Positions 2,450 through 57,108 are shown, counted from the whole stretch's first letter. The stretch: 57,490 nucleotides of DNA, filler included, from Platydemus manokwari (GCA_037951405.1; 5 parts of 5 records of this genome joined end to end with filler, not necessarily neighbours in it); one strand, 5' to 3'. A program made the numbers and translations. The notes: generated from the letters alone by a model not told the origin.

Positions 2450-2950
2450 TAATTCCTATTACCAATCGATAAACAACGCTCGTAACAAAAAAGTTTATTA
2501 CTGGAAACACAGAAACACTTTAAGGCAATATAAAAATCTATTAATGATTTATGATTAATACACTCCTTCAAAATTGTTGCAAAAACTTTTCAACGTGGTG
2601 AGACAAAGCCCGATAGTAGTATTAAAAGACGTGTCATATTGATTCTTGATTTTATAGAATAACTCGCTCACTTAGTTCACCCTAAGAACTCTTTAGTTAT
2701 TAGCTGGTAGAATATCTTCGGGCTTTATTCTAAATAGCAATAATTGAACGGCTTTGGCTTCAAGCATTTTTGTCTGCAAAGTAACTTCTTCCAATAGTTT
2801 CAGTGAATTAATTGGCGATGGCTTGGATTATGTAATGCCGTTTCTACTCTATTTTATCTTCAGATAGATGTGGCTTATTATTTATGTTTGTTCATTATTT
2901 GCTTTGTGTGGATAATTTAACATTTATTGAGGGAATTCCTTAAGAATATT
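2450..2950 (-). mobile_element. Decayed hAT (Ac/ZBED-like) transposase C-terminal fragment
   Basis: Fragments LKLLEEVTLQ, LLLSGFVSPR*K (compare LDPRFK) and IALKCFCVSSNKLFCYERCLSIG (compare dimerisation motif LAxKYLCxPATSxxxERxFS). Confidence 0.4.
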
Positions 2951-4469
2951 GAATCCACTAGTTAATTCTGTATGGATAATTTATTTAAATAATGCTGAAA
3001 TATTTTATTCATATTCATCCTAAAATGCATGCTGTATTAAAATAAATGGGTAATTATTTATTCTAATTATTGTGGTATTTTCCGAGAAATCGTAATTGGC
3101 GTTTGTATAAAATATAAAAAATTTATAAAAAAATACACATTCAACTTGATTAAAACTGGCATAGGCATCATTTACAGCAATTTTTGTGTTAAAAGTTACA
3201 ATGATGTACTATACAATATACACTTTGAACTTCCCACTATTTTTTTTTATTTTTTTTCAGATGCAGATGAGTAGACTGTTACTAGATGTTAAGTCGTGAA
3301 TATGGTGGAGGACTTCGTTGCTATTGATAATTTGTGGACACTACTATCGGGATCTTCGATCAATTTTGAGTTTTGGAGGGTCGTCATATATTGATTGTCA
3401 TCTGTTAAGTATTGCATATTCAGTGTTGAATTTGGAGTTCGTTGAGTGAAACATCTCCCTGGCGTAGATATCTGAGCTGTTTTTGAATATACCAGAGGTG
3501 CATAGAATTCCGGTGACAAACTGATCGGTCATGCTTGAGCTTCTGGAGAAAGGAGAAAGAGGGTTCCATTGCTGAAAGATGATTATATATTTCGGTGGGG
3601 ACACTTTCGCTATAACAAATGGTCCAATGCTCGATGTTCAGGTTCAGAATGCTCTCAGAAATTGTGTTGCTAGATGTAGCTGATGAGTCTGAATGTAAAC
3701 ACATATAACAAGGTATGTAGAGATTCTAATCCAGAGAATAATTGCAAGTATTATATGGACTGTAGCTCTTTCTGCGAGGATCTTCGAATATTTATCTTTA
3801 TTTCTTGAAGTGTCACATTTTTTTATTTTGATGATTTACCTCCAGTTTCATGAACCTGTATTTGTGGTGATTTGATAAGTTCTATTTCATCAAATTACCT
3901 TAACGTTATTTAATAATCCATTAAAAATACACCGAGTAATTGAAAGCAAGGGAATTGTTGGATATCTGTATATATCCATAGAAACATACAAATGTATATA
4001 ATACATAAAATTATAAATAAAATCAAATTAAAATTTTAACAATTCTTACTGTAGGCGAAAATAATTTTAACATAAATATTATTAATACACGTTGCCATGA
4101 AAGCTGTAGGAGTAACCTTGGTAATTTGAATTAAAATTTAAGATCACCATGGAAACGCAGGAAATTTCTATAATTAATAAATAATGAATAATAACACCCA
4201 CAAACGCCCACAACCCAAAGTAGTTTTTAAACAATTTTGACACAAAATTTAAGTGAAGGCACATTCATCATACTAAGATCTATCGTATAATATTGAATTT
4301 GCATTGGAATCAATTGAAATTTTCATTATCTACAAATTTGGAATTTACATATTCGCAAGGAGCTTTTGATTTTGATAGTACTAATTTCAGTGGATTGATT
4401 ACTTCGGACTTACAAAGGTAATTATTATTTTGCACATCCTTAATTGTCTTTCATCAATCTACAATAGGA

Positions 4470-45488: not shown

Positions 45489-46035
45489 TGTTGTGTATAT
45501 CGCAAATCAATCATAATGGTCCCAAGGACCAATGGAAAACCATTAAAAGGGTCAATACACACAAACTTGATAAACACACGTGCTGTTAACCAATCAGATT
45601 CGTTCTAATGTTAATCCATATTTAGAAGCTAAGAATCGACAGGCACATGCCTACAAACGGCATCAAGCTCAAATATCCCCCAATGACATAAGAAATTTGA
45701 GGAAGATCTCAAGTAAATCAACCAACGAATAAATTTAGCGAATTGAAAACGAACGACATCTAGCAGACACACTCGATGGGTATATAAAAAGGCTGAACTC
45801 CAAGGAATTTTGCCAGTCTTTTTGGTCGGTAACTTTTGTGCTCTTTTATTACTCTTTATTCTGTGTTTGACTTTTGAGCGATGATCCCATCTTGAGTGAT
45901 TTTCTTTGTGATTTGTTTAAAGAATTGTTATTGTTATTATTGAGGTGTAAAGAATTGTCATTGTTATTATTGAGGTTTCGAGTGTATTATTTTGGTTAAT
46001 ATAGCTTTGTAGATTCAAATTGTTGTTTAATAACA
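45489..46035 (+). mobile_element. Solo LTR-like element, copy B
   Basis: Starts tgttgtg, ends near taaca, has a TATA box tatataaaa at 45781, and is the inverted homologue of 40822-41378. Internal ~30-bp duplication of aagaattgt.attgttattattgagg. Right boundary approximate. Confidence 0.78.
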
Positions 46036-46942: not shown

Positions 46943-47279
46943 ATGCCTTCTAGGGCTTGCCAAAGTATAAGAGAAGAATTAAAATTTTGTTTATTGTTGA
47001 GTGATTGTCATAGAAAGGTTTTTAAATTAGTATTTAATTGTTAATATTTAATTCAATTTTCATTAAAATTAGGAAAAGAAAACGCTTTTTGGGTGTCTAC
47101 AACCTGATAATAGAAAGTATATTTCTGATGAATGTCATGGATACCAGCTTGCCTTGTACAATTGCAAAAGAGAAATTGTAAATATATTATTTTATAATTA
47201 ATTTATTCAATATTTTTTCCTTTAGCTCGACATGCGAAATCGATTTAGAGGAAGAAAGTACATGGAAGTTGAAAAATAG
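46943..47279 (+). CDS. COA5: Cytochrome c oxidase assembly factor 5 (PET191 family), 77 aa; exons 46943-47017, 47073-47177, 47226-47279
   Basis: Spliced product MPSRACQSIREELKFCLLLSDCHRKEKKTLFGCLQPDNRKYISDECHGYQLALYNCKREILDMRNRFRGRKYMEVEK* has the twin CX9C-type cysteine pattern, CLLxSDC and the diagnostic CKRxxLDxRxRFRGRK. Two phase-0 GT-AG introns (55 and 48 nt). Absent from the ORF track. Confidence 0.95.
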
Positions 47280-47784
47280 ACCATCTATATTTGTGACTGT
47301 TGGTACAACTAGTTTTGATGAACTTGTTGGCGTTTTTAATAAACATGATTTTCAAAATATAGTATTAAGTCTTGGTTATCGGAGAGTTGTGTTTCAGATT
47401 GGCAGAGGAACTATTATTCCTGAATCATGTAGTGACCTTATTTATGAATATTTTACATTTAAAAGTAACCTGCAAGAAGAATTCGATAATGCTAATCTTA
47501 TAGTCAGTCATGCCGGTGCTGGAACGTGTTTAGAAGTTTGTAAAGCTTCTATTCGTTTGGTAGTGGTTGTTAATGATAAATTAATGCACAATCATCAAAC
47601 AGAATTAGCGCTGAAGTTGCAGGAACGTGGGCATTGCATTTTCTCAACCTGTTGCGAACTTCCTTCGTTTTTTCAATCAAATACCTCCACCCTAGCTTCT
47701 CATGTTAATTTTGATGATGTTTTCTCAAAGTTTGAAACTGATTACTATCATAATGTAGCAAAAGCAATTGCTGGAATGTTTTAA
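47128..47784 (+). CDS. ALG13: UDP-N-acetylglucosamine transferase subunit ALG13 (GT28 C-terminal domain only); proposed exons 47128 (or 47137)-47177 and 47226-47784, overlapping COA5 in the +1 frame
   Basis: IFVTVGTTSFDELV, FQIGRG, LIVSHAGAGTCLE and VVVVNDKLMHNHQTELALKL. Identity is secure, but the start is inferred: the only in-frame AUGs upstream of the conserved N-terminus are at 47128 and 47137 inside COA5 exon 2. Confidence 0.93.
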
Positions 47785-47811
47785 AAATATAATTTATTGA
47801 TGATCACTTAT

Positions 47812-47817
47812 AATAAA
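47812..47817 (+). terminator. Candidate polyadenylation signal for the COA5-ALG13 transcript
   Basis: AATAAA 27 nt after the ALG13 stop, with T-rich sequence downstream. Confidence 0.55.
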
Positions 47818-50800
47818 ATGAAATCAAAAGAATTGATTTCATTGAATTTATTTGATTTGTAAAAATTGCAAATTTTTTAAAATCGATTTGGTGATCGGAA
47901 ATCATAACTTTGTATAATCAATTTTTGTAGAATGTTTTACTGATTTATTACGACCTGGCACTTTTAAAAGTAGTAAAGTTACTAAGAGATGGAAGAATAA
48001 CTTAATTCAATATGTGGAAGATAAGAAGAATGTCATTAAAAAAATTGCATCCACGCATCAACTTCTATGACCATCGAAAGAAAATTCATATTTTTGTTTA
48101 ATTTGGATGATTTGCCAATTCAAATATGAATAAAGAGATGGAATTGTTATCAATCAATATTCGATTTTAGTTATTTCAAGCTAAGGCAGTTTCTACGCGG
48201 AAGGCAGAGGTAGTGCGAAAGAAAGAAGAGGAAATTCGGTGTAAACGACTTATGAGAACGAAAGATATCGCATGATAAGTTTGGGGAAAAAGTAAACAGG
48301 GACTTTGGAAAAGATGGACTCAGCATAGAATAATGAGAACAAAAAAGGAAGAGAAGAGGATAGTGAAAAGACGAAAAAACATGATGATCTAGGTGACTAA
48401 AGAAAACAATGTAATTCAATTTTAGATATATAAACAATAACTATAACAATTTATTTTTGTACAACTTTCTTTATTGGACGAATTTTGATATACAATTTAT
48501 ACATGAGCAAATGGTTCGTTTGGTTATTAATTTTAAAAGAGATAAGATGAGAAAGGAAAATAAGTTTTGCTCCGAGATAGAACAATAGAAAGTATTGATT
48601 TTACTAAATGCAAAAATATTTGAGAATAATTCAAACTACTCTTCTCTTATGATTAACGAAGCGTCCACCGGAACATATCGACGACATTTTGACAATGTAA
48701 TCCTATAACCAAACAATCTAAAGTTCGGTTCACGAAAAACTACAGTTGCATATATTGACCAAGATGAAAAACATACATTAGCCACCCTATTCTCTGCAGC
48801 CAAACAAGCACATTTAAAAGAAAAATGTATCTTTGCACCTCAAAGAAACAGCTTAGAGTTTATCTTGGAGATGTCGGAACCCATTAGACTGGATCCTCGC
48901 CCAGTCATGGAAGTATATCAGTGTGAGTCACACATTGCTTTTGAACAAATCGAATTTCTTCAAACTCCCATCACATTAATTATCCAACTAGAATTCGATA
49001 ATATTTCAAATATCCCCAGTATTGTTACCTCTCCTTCACTGGACAAATACTTGAATGGGGTGAAATGAGAAGAAAAACTATTTTCATCGCTACCAGAACG
49101 GTAGGCAATGCTATAAAACTTAATATTGATGTGGTTACACTAGCAGTAGCAGTGATTACCACCCTTGAGTATCAAGGACTGGTTGTCATAAACTCACGAG
49201 TCAAGCCTCGTTATTTCGTGGAACACAGACGGACTTGCACAATAAATTGGATGAAATATACTGCTGTGAAAGATTGTAGGTGTTTCATATAGAACTTCGA
49301 TGGGGTTCAAATTAAAAATGTAAATTTTGTAAAAATTTATTGATCAACACTTAAAACAATCAAAAGATTTTACAATAATTATCACTCTATAATCTCTAAC
49401 TTATCTCCAGACAGTTAAGGTCGTTGCTGAGTTTTCGCTCGGTTATATAATAAAAATAATATTTAAAATATAAATAACAAAAACTAATAAAACAACACAG
49501 TAAAATATATTTGATTAATAAGCAAAGGATTTCAAAATTTTTCACGATAATTACAGCTCTATTGTGTAAGTAAAGGTACCCTCTAGCAAAAGTATAGAGC
49601 ATGCCGCTTATGTATCCTGGCAAGCACCTCTCAAAAAATAAAGTGGGGAACCAGTAAAGTGTGCTAAATTAATTTCACACTGTATTAAACAAGTCAATGA
49701 AAATAGTAGATTGATACATCCTCATTGAATACAAAAAGCAGAAATTTTAGGAATGTTAAAAATCTCACCAGATCGCTTTGTCGGTATAAGAGACCTCGAA
49801 AGATCAAAACGCAAGGCAGTTCACGGATTAGTAAGCCTTAATCAACTCAAGTTATGCACAGTTTTTAGAAAATTAATCCAAACATGAAATGACAAAGTTC
49901 CACGAACTGAGAACAGCTAACACTGTGGAAAAAATAAGACACATCTATTTGAAAATCGAAGATAAGTGACTGCACCATTTCTGCCCGATAATAACGGCAC
50001 TAAAATTTTTTAAATAAATCATGAAGGAATAAATATGTGGCATAGACGAAGAAACTGCAATGATAGCTTTAAATCAATTGACTAACTGATATATCAAATA
50101 TTAAGCATATGTAATGATGAAGGAGAACCCAAATTTGTAGATAAAAAAATCGATCTTAACCAACGAAAGTATCAGAATAAACGAAAAGCTCCCGAAAACC
50201 TCATATCCCTTGAAAAAAGATGATGACATATTACAGCTATTTAGGACACGTGTAAAAAAACTAGTATAATCCCATCGATTGTTTCACTAACCTCAAGGTC
50301 ATTTCAAAATTCAATAAAAATCCAAAAACAGGATTCGCATCATACTCAAAAATAGAATAACAACAAAAGTTATTAAAAAAAAATAGTTGCGTTGATTCAA
50401 AATAGTAAAACATGATACTAAGCATAGGATGTTGCTAAAAATAGCGACATGACTCAAAACACACATGCATGACAGAAATTGAAGCAATATATAAACGAGA
50501 GTCAATAGTCTCTTCACACACAATATTTTGAGCACATAGACCGCACGATCTCTACTTTTATATTTATGGTACTGAGCTTATACAATAAAATTTTATATTA
50601 TCTTATAAAATTGTAAAATTATTTCAATTAATCAAATATATTTTGTTGTTTGGCATTGTTTTATTTTATAATTAGTACTTATGTTTAATATATTATTTGA
50701 TAATATCAGATGATTAAATTACAACTACCACTGTTATCTTTTGGAAGTTAAAGATATCAAAAAACCATATGATCACAAATAATATCTCATCTTTAACAAC

Positions 50801-51380: not shown

Positions 51381-54300
51381 ATGCGATATATTAAAAAGAG
51401 GAGTTTCAATTTCATTGTATTATATTGGTAAGTACTATATATATAGTTTAAGCAATAAAATATATAATACATTTATATAATACATATAATTTCGTTTAGT
51501 TGCAATATCCTCCTGGGTTACTGTCCACTGACATTAAAACAAATTCCAGGTATTATTTTAAATATTTTGATAATTTTCAGTGGTATAATATAATTGATTT
51601 CCAAGAAATAATTATCCAGTTCCTATTGACATTGTTTACACTTGGGTCAATGGATCAGATTCGAGATTAATAAGTCAACTCAATTATTATAAATCAAATT
51701 TATATCTGGACAGGTTTACAAATTATTTAATATTTTACAATATCCAAATTGTATTTTATTTCAGAAATTTTGATTCTGGTGTTGACGTCAGAAAGTAATT
51801 ATTAGTAGTAATATATTAATAGATATATAATATTATCATTCGATTGAAAGATAAAATTCACGCTGATAGATGCTCGGTTATCAGTTTATGATTGTATATC
51901 AATTGAGTGAATGTTGTTTGTAGCGTGATTATTGATCATTGTAATAATATGATTATGTGTGTGTGCCAGGATATGGAAGCCACTGATGAAACATGTTGGT
52001 GTGCATTGTAATCATTCATTAAAATTCGAGCGTCACGAACCACTTATTTACATGCAAACATCTTTAGTCGACAGCTTAAATGAAATTTTTCATTATCAAT
52101 CATTTAATTCTGAGTATTTTTTCACTTGACAAATGACACGTGCTCACAGTGTTGTTTGATATTCTACTAACGGCAGCATTAAAAATCGCGGTTTTTTTTA
52201 TTTTTCTTTAATCACCAATATTTATGAATAATTTCTTTTATTGACTCACGTGTTAATCTCCTTAATAACACAAGTCCATGATAATGAAATGTAAACACTT
52301 AACAATTATTAATAATATTTTTTATTAAATAATAATAATAATAAATATTATAATTATTCAATAATAATAATAATAGAGTTTATGTTAATAATAATGGTAT
52401 AAATGTGATTATATATAAAGGATTCGCTCTTTCATATAAACAACTAGGCTACAAATGGCCTAATAAAAATGATATAAATGAAAAAATATTTAATTATATC
52501 TTTTGATTTTCGTGATTTTATATATATCCATAAGAAATAAATGTTGGACAGTACGAAATATTAGTTCTAAGCTTTAATATGGGTGTTATATTTTTCATAG
52601 ATTGTACCGAGTGACCACGTTGTTATAATATATTGAATCGATATTATAGATTTCACTGTCCATTTGAGTTATGTGGCTTCAATGATCATTTTCTTGTCTC
52701 ACCTTTACCTGCCATTGAGATAAATAGAAAGAGTTTCATCAATTCTCTAACAGAAACTCTACGAAAAAAGCTTAACATCACCACAATCAAGTTGCGTCTC
52801 ATTCGGATTGCTAGTCAATCAACGTATTCTAGAAAATCTGGATTCGTCTTCAAATCATCTCATTCTATTTCGAGTGGAGTGAACATTCTCCTAGTTTTCC
52901 ATTGATTAATTGAATTTTTCAGATCTTTTTTTTAATCATTCTGAATTTACTCTACCTCTACCAGGTTATTCTGATGTCGTGATTTCTGAAATCTTTATTG
53001 TACGTATCGTATTTTTTTGTATCAATTGGATTTTCTTTTTGATTTAGGCATCGACCAATGAAAAGATGGGATATCCAGTTTCCGATCATGTTTTCATATC
53101 GGGATTTCCCGAGATACGTGATGCTCAAAGTGAAGACATATGGCGCAAAGCCACCTTAAAAATGCTTCCTAATGACACTACAATGGTAAGATCTGGATGG
53201 AATATTGATTTTAAGTTTTAATTATTGAAAATTATTTATTTTCTGATTATTTTTTATTCATTTTTATTCATTGTTAACTGACATTTTATAAATGACAGCT
53301 GATATTTTATGAATAACATCATTTATCAAGTGATAATAATCGATATATAATATAATATTAATAATAATTTTAATAATAACAATTATGATAAAAGTGCATA
53401 ATAAACTGATATGGAATTAAAATGGAATTATAACAGATTCCCATAGCGAAGCGATAAGTAGTAATGAAATTAAGTTAACCGAACGTGAATCAGCACCGAT
53501 TAATGAGTGAATTATAGAATGGTCCACTCAAGCCTCTAATCGACACAGTTGTCATAGAAACAAGCCTGCCAATACCTGCCGAAATATCAATATTTCGGTC
53601 ATGATGCTTTGATAATTCTAAATAATTTTATAATCAAGAATTTTATTATTATTATTAATTTATATTTGAAATCAAATCACATAATAGTTATAACCAGTTT
53701 CATATTTTCGATTTGTGGATAGTTTCTTCAATTCAGAGCTCTCAATATAACTTAGTGATTTGCTAGTAGTCTTGATGCATCTTGAATCATTCAATGAATT
53801 AATAATCTTGTTTGGAATTTCAGAGATACTATTTCTAGCTGGTTGGGAAAACTCCAAAAAATAAATCCAATTTAAAGCTTAATTTCAATTTGAATTTCAT
53901 GCTTATATGTCTGTGCTTCCATCACTGGAATGCTACTAAATTATCAAGTTAAATTTCATTTCTTTAAATAATTATTCTTGTTATGGAAAAGCTACCGTTT
54001 GGTAAAATAGTCGATCTGGAAATGTATTATTTGATAAATATAAAATTAATCGAATTTTAAAATCAATATTTATAATTGTATATGTATTACTTTTAACATT
54101 ATGACTTATTTGCAGTTGCGCTATGATTTTTCGCAGTATCTTATTTTATCAAATAGGTTAAAGCCTCTGCAACTAGTTTCCTTATCGGACTACCTTCAAC
54201 CATGACTGCCGATGTATTTAATCAAACATTCAATGTTTCATCATTGGCTCCAGATCTATTAATTTCTAAGTCGATATTAATTATCGATATCGGCCTTGTT

Positions 54301-57108
54301 TCTGTTCTATCTGATCTATCGGAATCACGATTTCAGGACAATGATGTAAGTGATATTTCGATGATTTTTCCTACCAATATCTGCATCTCAGGAACTGAAA
54401 TATTCTCTGCGATCATTGAGTAAATTCGTTCGATTTTTCCGTCATATATTTATTGTAACAAATGGTCAAATTCCATCCTGGCTCAACAGCGATCATCCTG
54501 GAATCACTGTTTGTGATGATTTAAAATCGAATTGTATTCATTTTTTCCATGTATTTCAATAGGTCATCTCTCATTGGGACATTTTTCCTAATAAGACTGA
54601 TTTACCCACATTCAATTCGGCTGCCATTGAAGCTCAGTTGCATAACATTCCTAATCTCGCTCCTCATTTTATATATCTCAACGATGATGTTTTCTTTGGC
54701 AAAGAGATTTATCCGGAAGACTTTTATTCTCCAAGCACCGGATATAAAGTAAAGATTGGTCATTATTTATGATTCATTTGTTAGTGTTGTGGCATAATTT
54801 GTTGATGATTTCAGAAATATTGATTAATTTTATAGCTTATTTCTTTCACGAGAAGTTGATGCTTGATTAGAAATAACGAAATTGTTATTGTGAAATGAAT
54901 GACATATTTGTCCAATCAGATTCATTTGAAAAAAATCAATCAATCACAGAATTATTGTAGATTATTTCATATCATATATGACAGGGGTGGCCAACCGGTC
55001 TATCTTGAAGCCAATTGTAGTCGATTGCGTGAGATGTTATTCAAATGAAAAGTCGATCTTACGTACACAAAAGTTGGCCACCTCTGATATATGATATGTA
55101 TATAAATTGTGTGTGAATACCATGAAACCATTAGAATATTCGATAAATGCCAGTAACGATATACGATATTATATAATTATTCGAATCCTTTAACATTTGC
55201 GAAACATGCACCAAATTTAGAGCTCAACAATCAAAGAGTTCAATGAAGAAAATAAGAAAATTTTGTAGGCAAGAATTAATTAGAAAATATGTCAATTTAT
55301 TGACGAAAATTCATAAATATTGGTCGCAAAAACGTTGGAAATTTAAGTTTTTTTCTGAAAGTTTTTATGTTTAAAGTTAAGAAAAGGGATTCTAAAATAA
55401 AATTTTAAATTATGTTGAGTGTATTGCAAAAATCTATATAGTTTATTTAATTATATTCAAAATACCTTTAGATTTGATTATTTGAAAAACAGATCAAATT
55501 AGGTTAATTTAACCAGGTGAAAATTAACGAGGATTCCATTTTTTAATATTAGAATTAAATTGAGATATACATTAAATTTTTACAATTATTTGATAAAAAA
55601 AAACAAGTAATATTAGATTATTAAATATGTCACGAGTTTCCTAAGTTTGTTTATAATTAAATAAATTTAAATTTACAAAATCAAAAATCATGTAGGAGTA
55701 TTGTGATATTAATTTGGAATAAAAAAAATATATTCAGTTCTTATGCGAAATCGTAAAAAGTGAGATATTAACTGAATTATACGAATAAATCAGACATGGG
55801 AATTATATATGAAATTGTGCTATAAAACCACGTCATGCGCGAAAATTTATTATTATGAAAATAGATAAAAAGACTCCTTTTTAACTCAAGCCGTTTTTTA
55901 GTGAGTCAGAATTGATAGGGCATGACCAGGAATTGGTTTTATTTTTAAATCCATTAACATTGTTGTATTGAAGTGTACGATTTCTCTCAGGTGTATTTGG
56001 GGTGGTCTGTCCCGAACTGTGTAGATTCTTGTCCGAGCTCTTGGCTAGGAGATGGATACTGTGATCATGACTGCAATGTTGCCGAATGTCAATGGGATTC
56101 TGGTGATTGCATAAAATCTGGAGGCAAACCCGGCATGGTGAACTTTGTCCAAAATATTAATAACAGCCTTCTACAACATGATAATCTTCGATCAGTCTTA
56201 TCAGAACTGGACAGTGTGTCCTGTAGCCATGGTTGCAATAGTAACTGGCTAGCTGATCGATATTGTGATCAGGCTTGCAATGTCAAAAACTGTGGATTTG
56301 ATTTAGGAGACTGTGGTGACGTGAATATTTTTAGTCTACCACGTACCAATATTACACAGGATCGAGGCCAATTGGTAATTGTCGCTAATGGTGAGCCTTT
56401 ACGCTTTTATCCTGAATGATGTTGATTGTTTCGCCTGTCACGGTGGAGAAATTATACAGTTTTATTATAATATTATTTTTGGATTATGGATTATCTTTTT
56501 TCATTTTGTCCTTTCTCTTCTGTAATGCTCTGAGTATCGTCGATTTATATCGAAATAATAAATGGAACTGTATTAATGTTTGTTAATCATTTTGTTAATT
56601 TTTGGATTAATTTTCTTGAGTAATTGTGTTGGATAATTATGCTGTTTAATATAATTATATCAAAAATGAATAATTTTGATCATTTCTTAGGCACTCGAGT
56701 TTTTGTGATTGGACTGCAAAATGTAATCAGTACAAGTGATATTGTTTCTCAGGCAACAATCGATGATGTTAAAGAGATATTTGCTTCTAGTTACGCTGTC
56801 AAATATCGATTTATTATCATTATTTTCAATTATTTGGACTCGTGTAAAGAATGTTTTAATAAATCAGATCAAATTGTCAGACTGAATTTAACATTGTCGA
56901 GCTCTATTAATAATTCCACGAAAAATGTTGATTTGTTGTCAAAGCTATTTGTTTTTTTATTTTCATAATTTTAGATTCTAGTGAACTTGGTCCTTAATTC
57001 TCATGATTTACATATCAATGTATCAACAATCAAAAGTATTAGATCAACGAAACCCGCTACAACATCGCCTTTAATCAATTTAGCTACGAGCCCAGTTCGA
57101 GACATCGA
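51381..57108 (+). CDS. GNPTAB: GlcNAc-1-phosphotransferase alpha/beta precursor, 5' half; well-supported exons include 51620-51713, ~54157-54345, 54392-54508, 54563-54748, 55991-56390; continues right of the window
   Basis: Stealth CR1 VPIDIVYTWVNGSD; CR2 SRFQDND/ELKYSLRSL..RHIFIVTNGQIPSWLN../LPTFNSAAIEAQLHNIPNLAPHFIYLNDDVFFG; two LNR/Notch repeats (CPSSWLGDGYCDHDCNVAECQWDSGDC and CNSNWLADRYCDQACNVKNCGFDLGDC). The first exons are tentative. Confidence 0.95.
54982..55086. mobile_element. hAT (Buster/Charlie-type) MITE, 105 bp, in a GNPTAB intron
   Basis: TIRs caggggtggccaac and gttggccacctctg match at 13 of 14 positions. Perfect 8-bp target-site duplication atatatga at 54974-54981 and 55087-55094. 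Confidence 0.95.

Follow-up and report, generated by a model that had tools for sequence, protein, structure and literature searches.

The window (the whole stretch of DNA analysed, 57,490 nucleotides with filler) carries on its plus strand, between 46943 and 47817, two genes that are read in different frames and share part of their sequence. The first is a three-exon gene whose protein places it in the COA5/Pet191 family (PF10203) of mitochondrial assembly factors; its spliced product has 77 amino acids and stops at the TAG at 47277-47279. The second is the N-glycosylation gene ALG13, whose frame is +1 relative to COA5 and stays open from the acceptor at 47226 to the TAA at 47782-47784. A search with ALG13 found only three close relatives, at 56-59% identity: L001 (a Logan contig), L002/L003 (a soil contig) and P0001 (a gene model present only in UniParc). 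The features of the locus are the following.

46943-47017, plus strand: COA5 exon 1, by direct reading of the sequence; start AUG at 46943, exon peptide matching Pet191_N
47018-47072, plus strand: COA5 intron 1, 55 nt, GT..AG; L002 has an intron at the same position
47073-47177, plus strand: COA5 exon 2, exon peptides matching Pet191_N
47128-47139, plus strand: two AUGs in the ALG13 (+1) frame, 47128 in a weak context and 47137 with G at both -3 and +4; third-frame AUG at 47132
47178-47225, plus strand: COA5 intron 2, 48 nt, GT..AG, crossed also by the candidate extended ALG13 frame; same position in L002 and in a further contig, L090
47226-47279, plus strand: COA5 exon 3, with the stop TAG at 47277-47279
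47249-47250, plus strand: candidate alternative or trans-splice acceptor AG (putative), within TTTAGAG and preceding the ALG13-frame GAA at 47251
47269-47271, plus strand: UUG, first start-like ALG13 codon, aligned with the ALG13 AUG of L002; 8 nt before the COA5 stop
47281-47784, plus strand: conserved core of ALG13, beyond the COA5 stop; IFVTVGTT begins at 47287, terminal TAA at 47782-47784
47338-47343, plus strand: second AATAAA, within ALG13 (codons N-K) and 59 nt past the COA5 stop; not kept in L001 or L002
47812-47817, plus strand: AATAAA, probable poly(A) signal of the COA5-ALG13 unit, 28 nt beyond the ALG13 stop
ALG13 frame from the exon 2 AUGs: predicted N-terminal extension peptides MDTSLPCTIAK and FSTCEIDLEEESTWK

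The COA5 and ALG13 genes

The earlier note on this DNA had described a complete three-exon COA5 ORF ending at 47279 inside the ALG13 frame, and both direct reading and matches to the Pet191_N profile bear this out. The exon peptides of the window reach 21.6 bits (profile positions 1-22) and 19.1 bits (positions 25-56), individually under the cut-off of 24.4 bits; the intronless orthologue in L001, which is 77% identical to the COA5 of the window (tblastn), scores 71.9 bits (E 5e-20, profile positions 2-67). The spliced product contains C6, C16, C22, C33, C46 and C56 and the C-terminal DMRNRFRGRK, and the conserved cysteines and the RFRG(R/K)K motif are common to COA5 of the window, L001, L002, Macrostomum lignano and other COA5 proteins. 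The context of the COA5 start codon, tactttATGc, is weak: position -3 is T and position +4 a pyrimidine. The COA5 AUG of L002 likewise has T at -3 and a pyrimidine at +4; that of Macrostomum, where the COA5 and ALG13 ORFs do not overlap, has A at -3. The sequence piece is AT-rich (22-34% GC). Codons 10-16 of COA5 (EELKFCL; window 46970-46993, L001:28-51, L002:1077-1100) are nearly identical in nucleotides across the three species, GAAGAATT(A/G)AAATTTTGTTTA, even though L001 is GC-richer; this may be chance or codon bias.

The ALG13 product matches PF04101 (Glyco_tran_28_C) with 71.5 bits (E 1.1e-19; curated cut-off 22 bits) and the yeast Alg13 structures 2KS6/2JZC with E ~3e-11, and it is ~50% identical to named ALG13 proteins. 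Its GTT, SHAGAGT and NHQxEL motifs are invariant. With an intact ORF (171 codons from the TTG at 47269, 185 in-frame codons from the acceptor at 47226) and the family-invariant residues kept, the gene looks functional. A ciliate-type genetic code was ruled out, because ALG13 ends at the same residue with TAA (window, L002) and with TGA (L001).

There is no in-frame ATG for ALG13 between the acceptor at 47226 and IFVTVGTT (I at 47287), as had been claimed. The usual ALG13 AUG, a few residues before FVTVGTT, is present in L002, P0001, Macrostomum and L090 and absent in the window, where the first start-like codon is the TTG at 47269, with A at -3. The earlier note had also named a base error hiding an AUG near 47272-47285 as a point to check. 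Sequencing-run searches gave a single run with the locus, a DNA run that may be the source sample, and no RNA run; a contig of the DNA run covers 47093-49403 with zero differences from the window, and the TTG is therefore uncontested in that run.

Read on the spliced RNA, the +1 frame is also open across the 48-nt intron, from exon 3 back to the ATGs at 47128 and 47137 in COA5 exon 2. As a consequence 104 spliced nucleotides can be read in two frames (47128-47177 and 47226-47279, 50 + 54 nt), which agrees with the estimate of about 100 in the earlier note. Its statement that the frame is closed by a TAA in exon 1 holds as to closure, but the nearest upstream stop is a TGA at 46998-47000, and two TAAs lie farther upstream. 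Likewise, the one AATAAA that it placed just after ALG13 exists but is accompanied by the second, internal one, which could in principle yield an mRNA with COA5 only.

Downstream of the pair, on the plus strand between 51598 and 57400, lie exons of a GNPTAB-like (GlcNAc-1-phosphotransferase) gene: Stealth CR1 at 51598-51795 (E 1e-11), more Stealth-like exons at ~54365-54769 and two LNR/Notch-type cysteine repeats at 55958-56416. These exons suggest an animal genome. At 45500-46035 and 49386-49500 the contig depth of the DNA run rises up to ~44,000, against ~14 over the genes, and variant letters and internal joints are numerous there; the COA5-ALG13 pair is thus flanked by a highly abundant repeat family. 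No Rfam family, SL RNA included, was found in the 15-kb piece that holds the locus. A bacterial promoter and terminator scan, irrelevant to a eukaryote, gave nothing.

The pairing in close and distant relatives

Conserved overlap in relatives had been proposed as a check, and the same overlapping layout was found in all three close relatives. On the ALG13 tree they group with the window with full support, on a long branch, and Macrostomum and P0085 stand nearest to this clade, without firm branching. In L001, L002/L003 and P0001 alike, the homologous COA5 'DEC' codons, 36 codons ahead of (I/V)FVTVGTT, contain an AUG in the ALG13 frame. The three relatives differ in what follows it. In L001, COA5 is without introns and is overlapped directly by the +1-frame ALG13, which has no AUG of its own; near-cognate start codons are also absent at the homologous place, the sole candidate being an AUA just before FVTVGTT. 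In L002/L003 both COA5 introns are found at the positions of the window, with the same upstream AUG and the same open +1 frame, and ALG13 has its own AUG within ATGAAGAATAA, exactly where the window has TTG; it overlaps the COA5 stop, the overlap of COA5 stop and ALG13 start being 11 nt. The P0001 model begins with the upstream AUG, and further Met residues lie inside it close to the core. An ALG13 AUG at or near the position of the window UUG is hence found in two of the three relatives (L002, P0001).

The L001 contig, lacking both COA5 introns, could well be a processed RNA with both ORFs; alternatively it is genomic DNA of a species that lost the introns, which would count against this point for co-transcription. 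The gene caller read the ALG13 stop TGA of L001 as W after '...EAMF' and so produced a 280-aa protein (P0003, L001:735-968), an annotation artefact. The L002/L003 contig is 100% identical over 1371 nt in two soil metagenomes (JGI 3300031718, ENA ERZ27256860), and its presence in two unrelated soil surveys indicates that this clade member is a soil animal. A metagenome scan with the ALG13 alignment returned the same soil contig as its sole close relative. The runs tied to contigs L001, L089 and L090 are SRR21676451, SRR30276804 and DRR639838.

In the protein collections searched we found no COA5 protein of the window clade, and a word-indexed protein search with COA5 gave no candidates; exact protein look-ups for P0001 and for the M. 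lignano models P0121 and P0271 gave no contigs. Standard gene finders are unable to call both COA5 and ALG13: the only protein on record from the one annotated genome of the clade, P0001, is an ALG13 model into which part of COA5 has been taken up. As gene finders miss one of the pair, such genomes may seem to lack ALG13 or COA5 through an annotation artefact.

Outside this clade, COA5 lies just upstream of ALG13 on the same strand in Macrostomum lignano, in a Macrostomum relative (L089) and in L090. The M. lignano genome has COA5 as a single exon with its own AUG and stop, and ALG13 1-2.4 kb downstream on the same strand. The best HMMER-scan match to COA5 was an in-frame COA5-ALG13 fusion model of M. 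lignano. In P0121 and P0271, COA5 is spliced in frame to the ALG13 exon, with the donor five codons ahead of the COA5 stop and the acceptor ~55 nt ahead of the ALG13 AUG; NCBI annotates ALG13 alone (P0278). The UniProt/WormBase models A0A1I8GDK6 and A0A1I8G3E7 fuse the two genes (L086:1960-2005 and 2940-3003, donor AA/GTTCTC). The M. lignano fusion would be a minor isoform that really exists or else an artefact, a chimera arising from an operon. In L089, a spacer of 11 nt separates COA5 from ALG13, and the ALG13 intron known in M. lignano is missing; for this reason the contig looks like a processed RNA carrying both ORFs. L090 starts in an intron at the position of intron 2 of the window and continues with COA5 exon 3, its stop, 3 nt and the ALG13 AUG. 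In the three clear cases (L002, L089, L090), the distance from COA5 stop to ALG13 start ranges from -11 to +11 nt, which would suit termination-reinitiation or trans-splicing as well.

COA5 was absent within 10 kb of ALG13 in a tardigrade and a nemertean, and from the flanks of 79 more distant metagenomic ALG13 loci (0/79). Kept in the lineages above and absent from these, the linkage appears to be old and lineage-restricted; its nearest named carrier is a flatworm. On this distribution the pairing is evidently not chance. A series is visible, from separate cistrons (M. lignano) through spacings of 3-11 nt and an 11-nt overlap with an AUG to an overlap in which the AUG is lost.

Routes to an ALG13 start

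The earlier note had read the locus as one bicistronic, dual-coding mRNA. The part of this reading that concerns the locus itself stands, as the pair is a conserved, tight unit on one strand, with overlapping ORFs and with the features expected of leaky scanning; a single mature mRNA in this genome and the use of the exon 2 AUGs we infer from them. On the spliced RNA the AUGs lie at positions 1 (COA5, T at -3), 131 (+1 frame), 135 and 140 (+1 frame, strong context), so that the AUG at 47128 is the second on the RNA. Between the COA5 AUG and the +1 AUG, all three frames are free of AUGs in the window, in L002 and in the available part of L001. In these three sequences the +1 frame has 2-3 stops in the ~42 codons before the exon 2 AUG and none in the 34-35 codons after it, a stretch over which the +2 frame has 2-4. 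A +1 frame that is stop-free after its AUG, the lack of an intervening AUG and the weak COA5 AUG together favour the exon 2 AUGs.

We tentatively favour, at a little less than an even chance, the reading that COA5-ALG13 is an inherited co-transcribed unit and that ALG13 is made from the spliced RNA of COA5, through leaky scanning to 47128 or 47137. A tight COA5-ALG13 unit would have become overlapped in this lineage. Some scanning ribosomes would then bypass the weak COA5 AUG at 46943 and start in the +1 frame within COA5 exon 2, at the next AUG (47128) or at the stronger one (47137). Translation would cross the exon 2/exon 3 junction into ALG13 and add an N-terminal extension of 33-36 residues. 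Selection would have kept the +1 frame open, the extended ALG13 presumably still working, and the original ALG13 AUG, now dispensable, would have been lost in the window, where it decayed to the UUG at 47269, and in L001. That ALG13, an essential enzyme of N-glycan precursor synthesis, is obligatorily initiated inside a COA5 exon, in the other frame and across a splice junction, with dual coding selected clade-wide and derived from an older flatworm-type operon, is a larger claim, which we regard as possible but short of probable.

We estimated how often the +1 frame would be open by chance, keeping the COA5 protein fixed and resampling synonymous codons from the ALG13 codon usage of each species. 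The probabilities were 0.21, 0.13 and 0.74, with a product of ~0.02 if the lineages are independent. This speaks for the exon 2 start, but the statistic is modest and the three sequences are not fully independent. Other observations temper the reading. Reduced synonymous variation in the overlap, which had been suggested as a further check, did not appear: COA5 showed no excess synonymous-site conservation there, with third positions at 0.59-0.71 in the overlap vs 0.50-0.62 before it. Nor did we see sequence constraint proper to the N-terminal extension of ALG13, which is poorly conserved. The AUG at 47128 stands in a weak context and is partly forced by the COA5 residues D-E; both points count against the exon 2 start, as does the fact that L002 and P0001 keep their own AUG, so that the upstream AUG is not needed there.

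The own AUG of L002 leads to the first alternative, termination followed by reinitiation. Ribosomes that have finished COA5 at 47277-47279 would restart at the near-cognate UUG at 47269, and the open upstream frame would be incidental. COA5 stop and ALG13 start are always close (11-nt overlap in L002, 3-nt gap in L090, 11-nt gap in L089), the TTG of the window aligns exactly with the ATG of L002 and the COA5 ORF is short (77 codons). UUG is normally inefficient as a start codon. Moreover, L001 offers no near-cognate codon at the homologous place, having only the AUA before FVTVGTT; no distinctive RNA structure exists around or after the COA5 stop (z = -0.12, 100 nt against shuffles); and the 34-35 stop-free +1 codons in three species are left unexplained. 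Cellular cases of coupled termination-reinitiation on overlapping ORFs are described (PMC3923131), and nematode ribosome footprints are reported to show UUG as the commonest non-AUG start (PMC9851317). We consider this alternative unlikely.

The nearest identifiable organism with the same linkage, M. lignano, is a flatworm, and this brings in spliced-leader trans-splicing. The COA5-ALG13 operon would be resolved by addition of a leader, and the leader itself would supply the ALG13 AUG, provided that the animal is a flatworm, in which case its leader should end in AUG. The 35-nt leader of M. lignano ends in ...TTGCATG, ~30% of its genes being trans-spliced and 15% lying in operons (PMC8629364), and more than 40 S. 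mansoni cDNAs need the leader AUG (PMC9851317). Flatworm acceptors are often common to cis- and trans-splicing, and operons give rise to chimeric gene models (PMC12582326). Here the leader could join at AGAG/GAA (47250/47251, giving M-EESTWK...) or at AAG/TTG (47268/47269, giving M-LKNRPS...), either of which would make a monocistronic ALG13 mRNA. The AGs at 47250 and 47268 are the only in-frame ones upstream of the ALG13 core, and both are weak acceptors. The window, L001 and L002 all have the in-frame AGAG, but it is forced by the COA5 residues R-F-R-G, and its AG, with G at -3, lacks a pyrimidine tract. A better acceptor (TTTAG/) lies two bases upstream, but it is in the wrong frame and leads to a stop after 7 codons, and a leader AUG at the true exon 3 acceptor would be in the COA5 frame. 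There is no room for a COA5 poly(A) site before the acceptor, and the open +1 frame in exon 2 is again left without explanation. We think this route quite improbable.

ALG13 could also be made as a fusion with COA5, either by use of another 3' splice site, which would join exon 2 to 47251 and so shift the acceptor by 25 nt, or through a +1 frameshift at AAA-UAG-A (47274-47280). Both routes land in the ALG13 frame by arithmetic, and the in-frame chimeras P0121 and P0271 provide a precedent of sorts; these may be operon artefacts of the kind in PMC12582326. M. lignano COA5 has its own genomic stop, and the NCBI model (P0278) has ALG13 alone. For a programmed +1 frameshift one would look for a conserved shift site and a stimulatory element, but the codons at the candidate site vary by species (AAA-UAG, AAA-UGA, GAA-UAA) and the same z value of -0.12 shows no stimulatory structure after the COA5 stop, so that programmed frameshifting is not indicated here. 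Such a protein would furthermore join an intermembrane-space protein to a cytosolic enzyme with no obvious rationale. Our view is that a fusion is very unlikely.

Finally, it is most improbable that this ALG13 copy was recently disabled by loss of its start codon, or is redundant with a copy elsewhere, the overlap then having no consequence for expression: the canonical ATG is indeed missing and the genome was inspected over the 15-kb piece only, but the ORF is intact despite a genome of 25-30% GC, with all family-invariant residues kept, the second AUG-less lineage (L001) is equally intact and the sequence is confirmed by the independent contig build of the DNA run.

Known systems of the same kind

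A differently framed overlap of two ancient, functionally unrelated nuclear genes is rare in animals, and here it is conserved across several lineages. What is distinctive is the combination of such a conserved overlap with a lost downstream start codon, which makes the locus a natural system for asking by what means the second cistron of an operon remains translated while the operon becomes compact, whether by leaky scanning, by reinitiation or by a leader-donated AUG. Literature searches in our library gave no paper that joins COA5 or PET191 with ALG13 as an operon or bicistronic gene, and the supplements of the flatworm operon paper mention neither COA5 nor ALG13.

The overlap can be set beside human dual-coding genes such as POLG/POLGARF and SLC35A4 (PMC10742948, PMC12183330), in which two frames are read on one stretch of mRNA, as predicted here, with access by leaky scanning or reinitiation. 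In those genes one product is young or lineage-restricted; in contrast, COA5 and ALG13 are both ancient and unrelated and came to overlap later. Coupled termination-reinitiation, as at viral UAAUG-type junctions and in cellular cases (PMC3923131), resembles the pair in that stop and start lie within ~11 nt in L002, L089 and L090 and that the first ORF is short. It differs in that the window and L001 have no AUG at the junction and no tethering motif or structure was found, and a conserved open upstream frame is not part of that mechanism.

Closer are the flatworm operons. COA5-ALG13 is a same-strand pair with essentially no intergenic space, its linkage is common to Macrostomum and it is conserved between species, with a gap of 3 nt in L090 and 11 nt in L089 and overlapping ORFs in the window clade. 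Such pairs give rise to chimeric gene models, and a downstream gene without an AUG is the very situation in which a leader AUG serves as initiator; use of the 3'-terminal AUG of the leader in flatworms is reported in PMC12582326, PMC8629364 and PMC9851317 (and Cheng et al. 2006 as cited there). The S. mansoni operons analysed have a spacer of at least 5 bp, with a median of 99 bp (PMC12582326). Unlike in these operons, the COA5 and ALG13 cistrons overlap, and so no poly(A) site or spacer separates them, and no good in-frame acceptor is visible.

MOCS2A/MOCS2B is an animal bicistronic mRNA with overlapping frames, the second ORF being reached by leaky scanning. Like MOCS2, the present locus has a small upstream and a larger downstream ORF in different frames of a presumed single transcription unit, a weak first AUG with no intervening AUG, and two conserved housekeeping proteins as products. 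The two MOCS2 proteins are subunits of one enzyme, whereas COA5 and ALG13 belong to unrelated pathways and compartments. Also unlike MOCS2, the predicted downstream start falls within the upstream coding sequence, at a depth of 104 nt and with an intron to cross, the ancestral AUG of the downstream gene has been lost, and translation from one mRNA is a prediction here. By analogy, then, COA5-ALG13 would work like an overlapping bicistronic gene of the MOCS2A/B type or like a compacted flatworm operon, both of which are known kinds.
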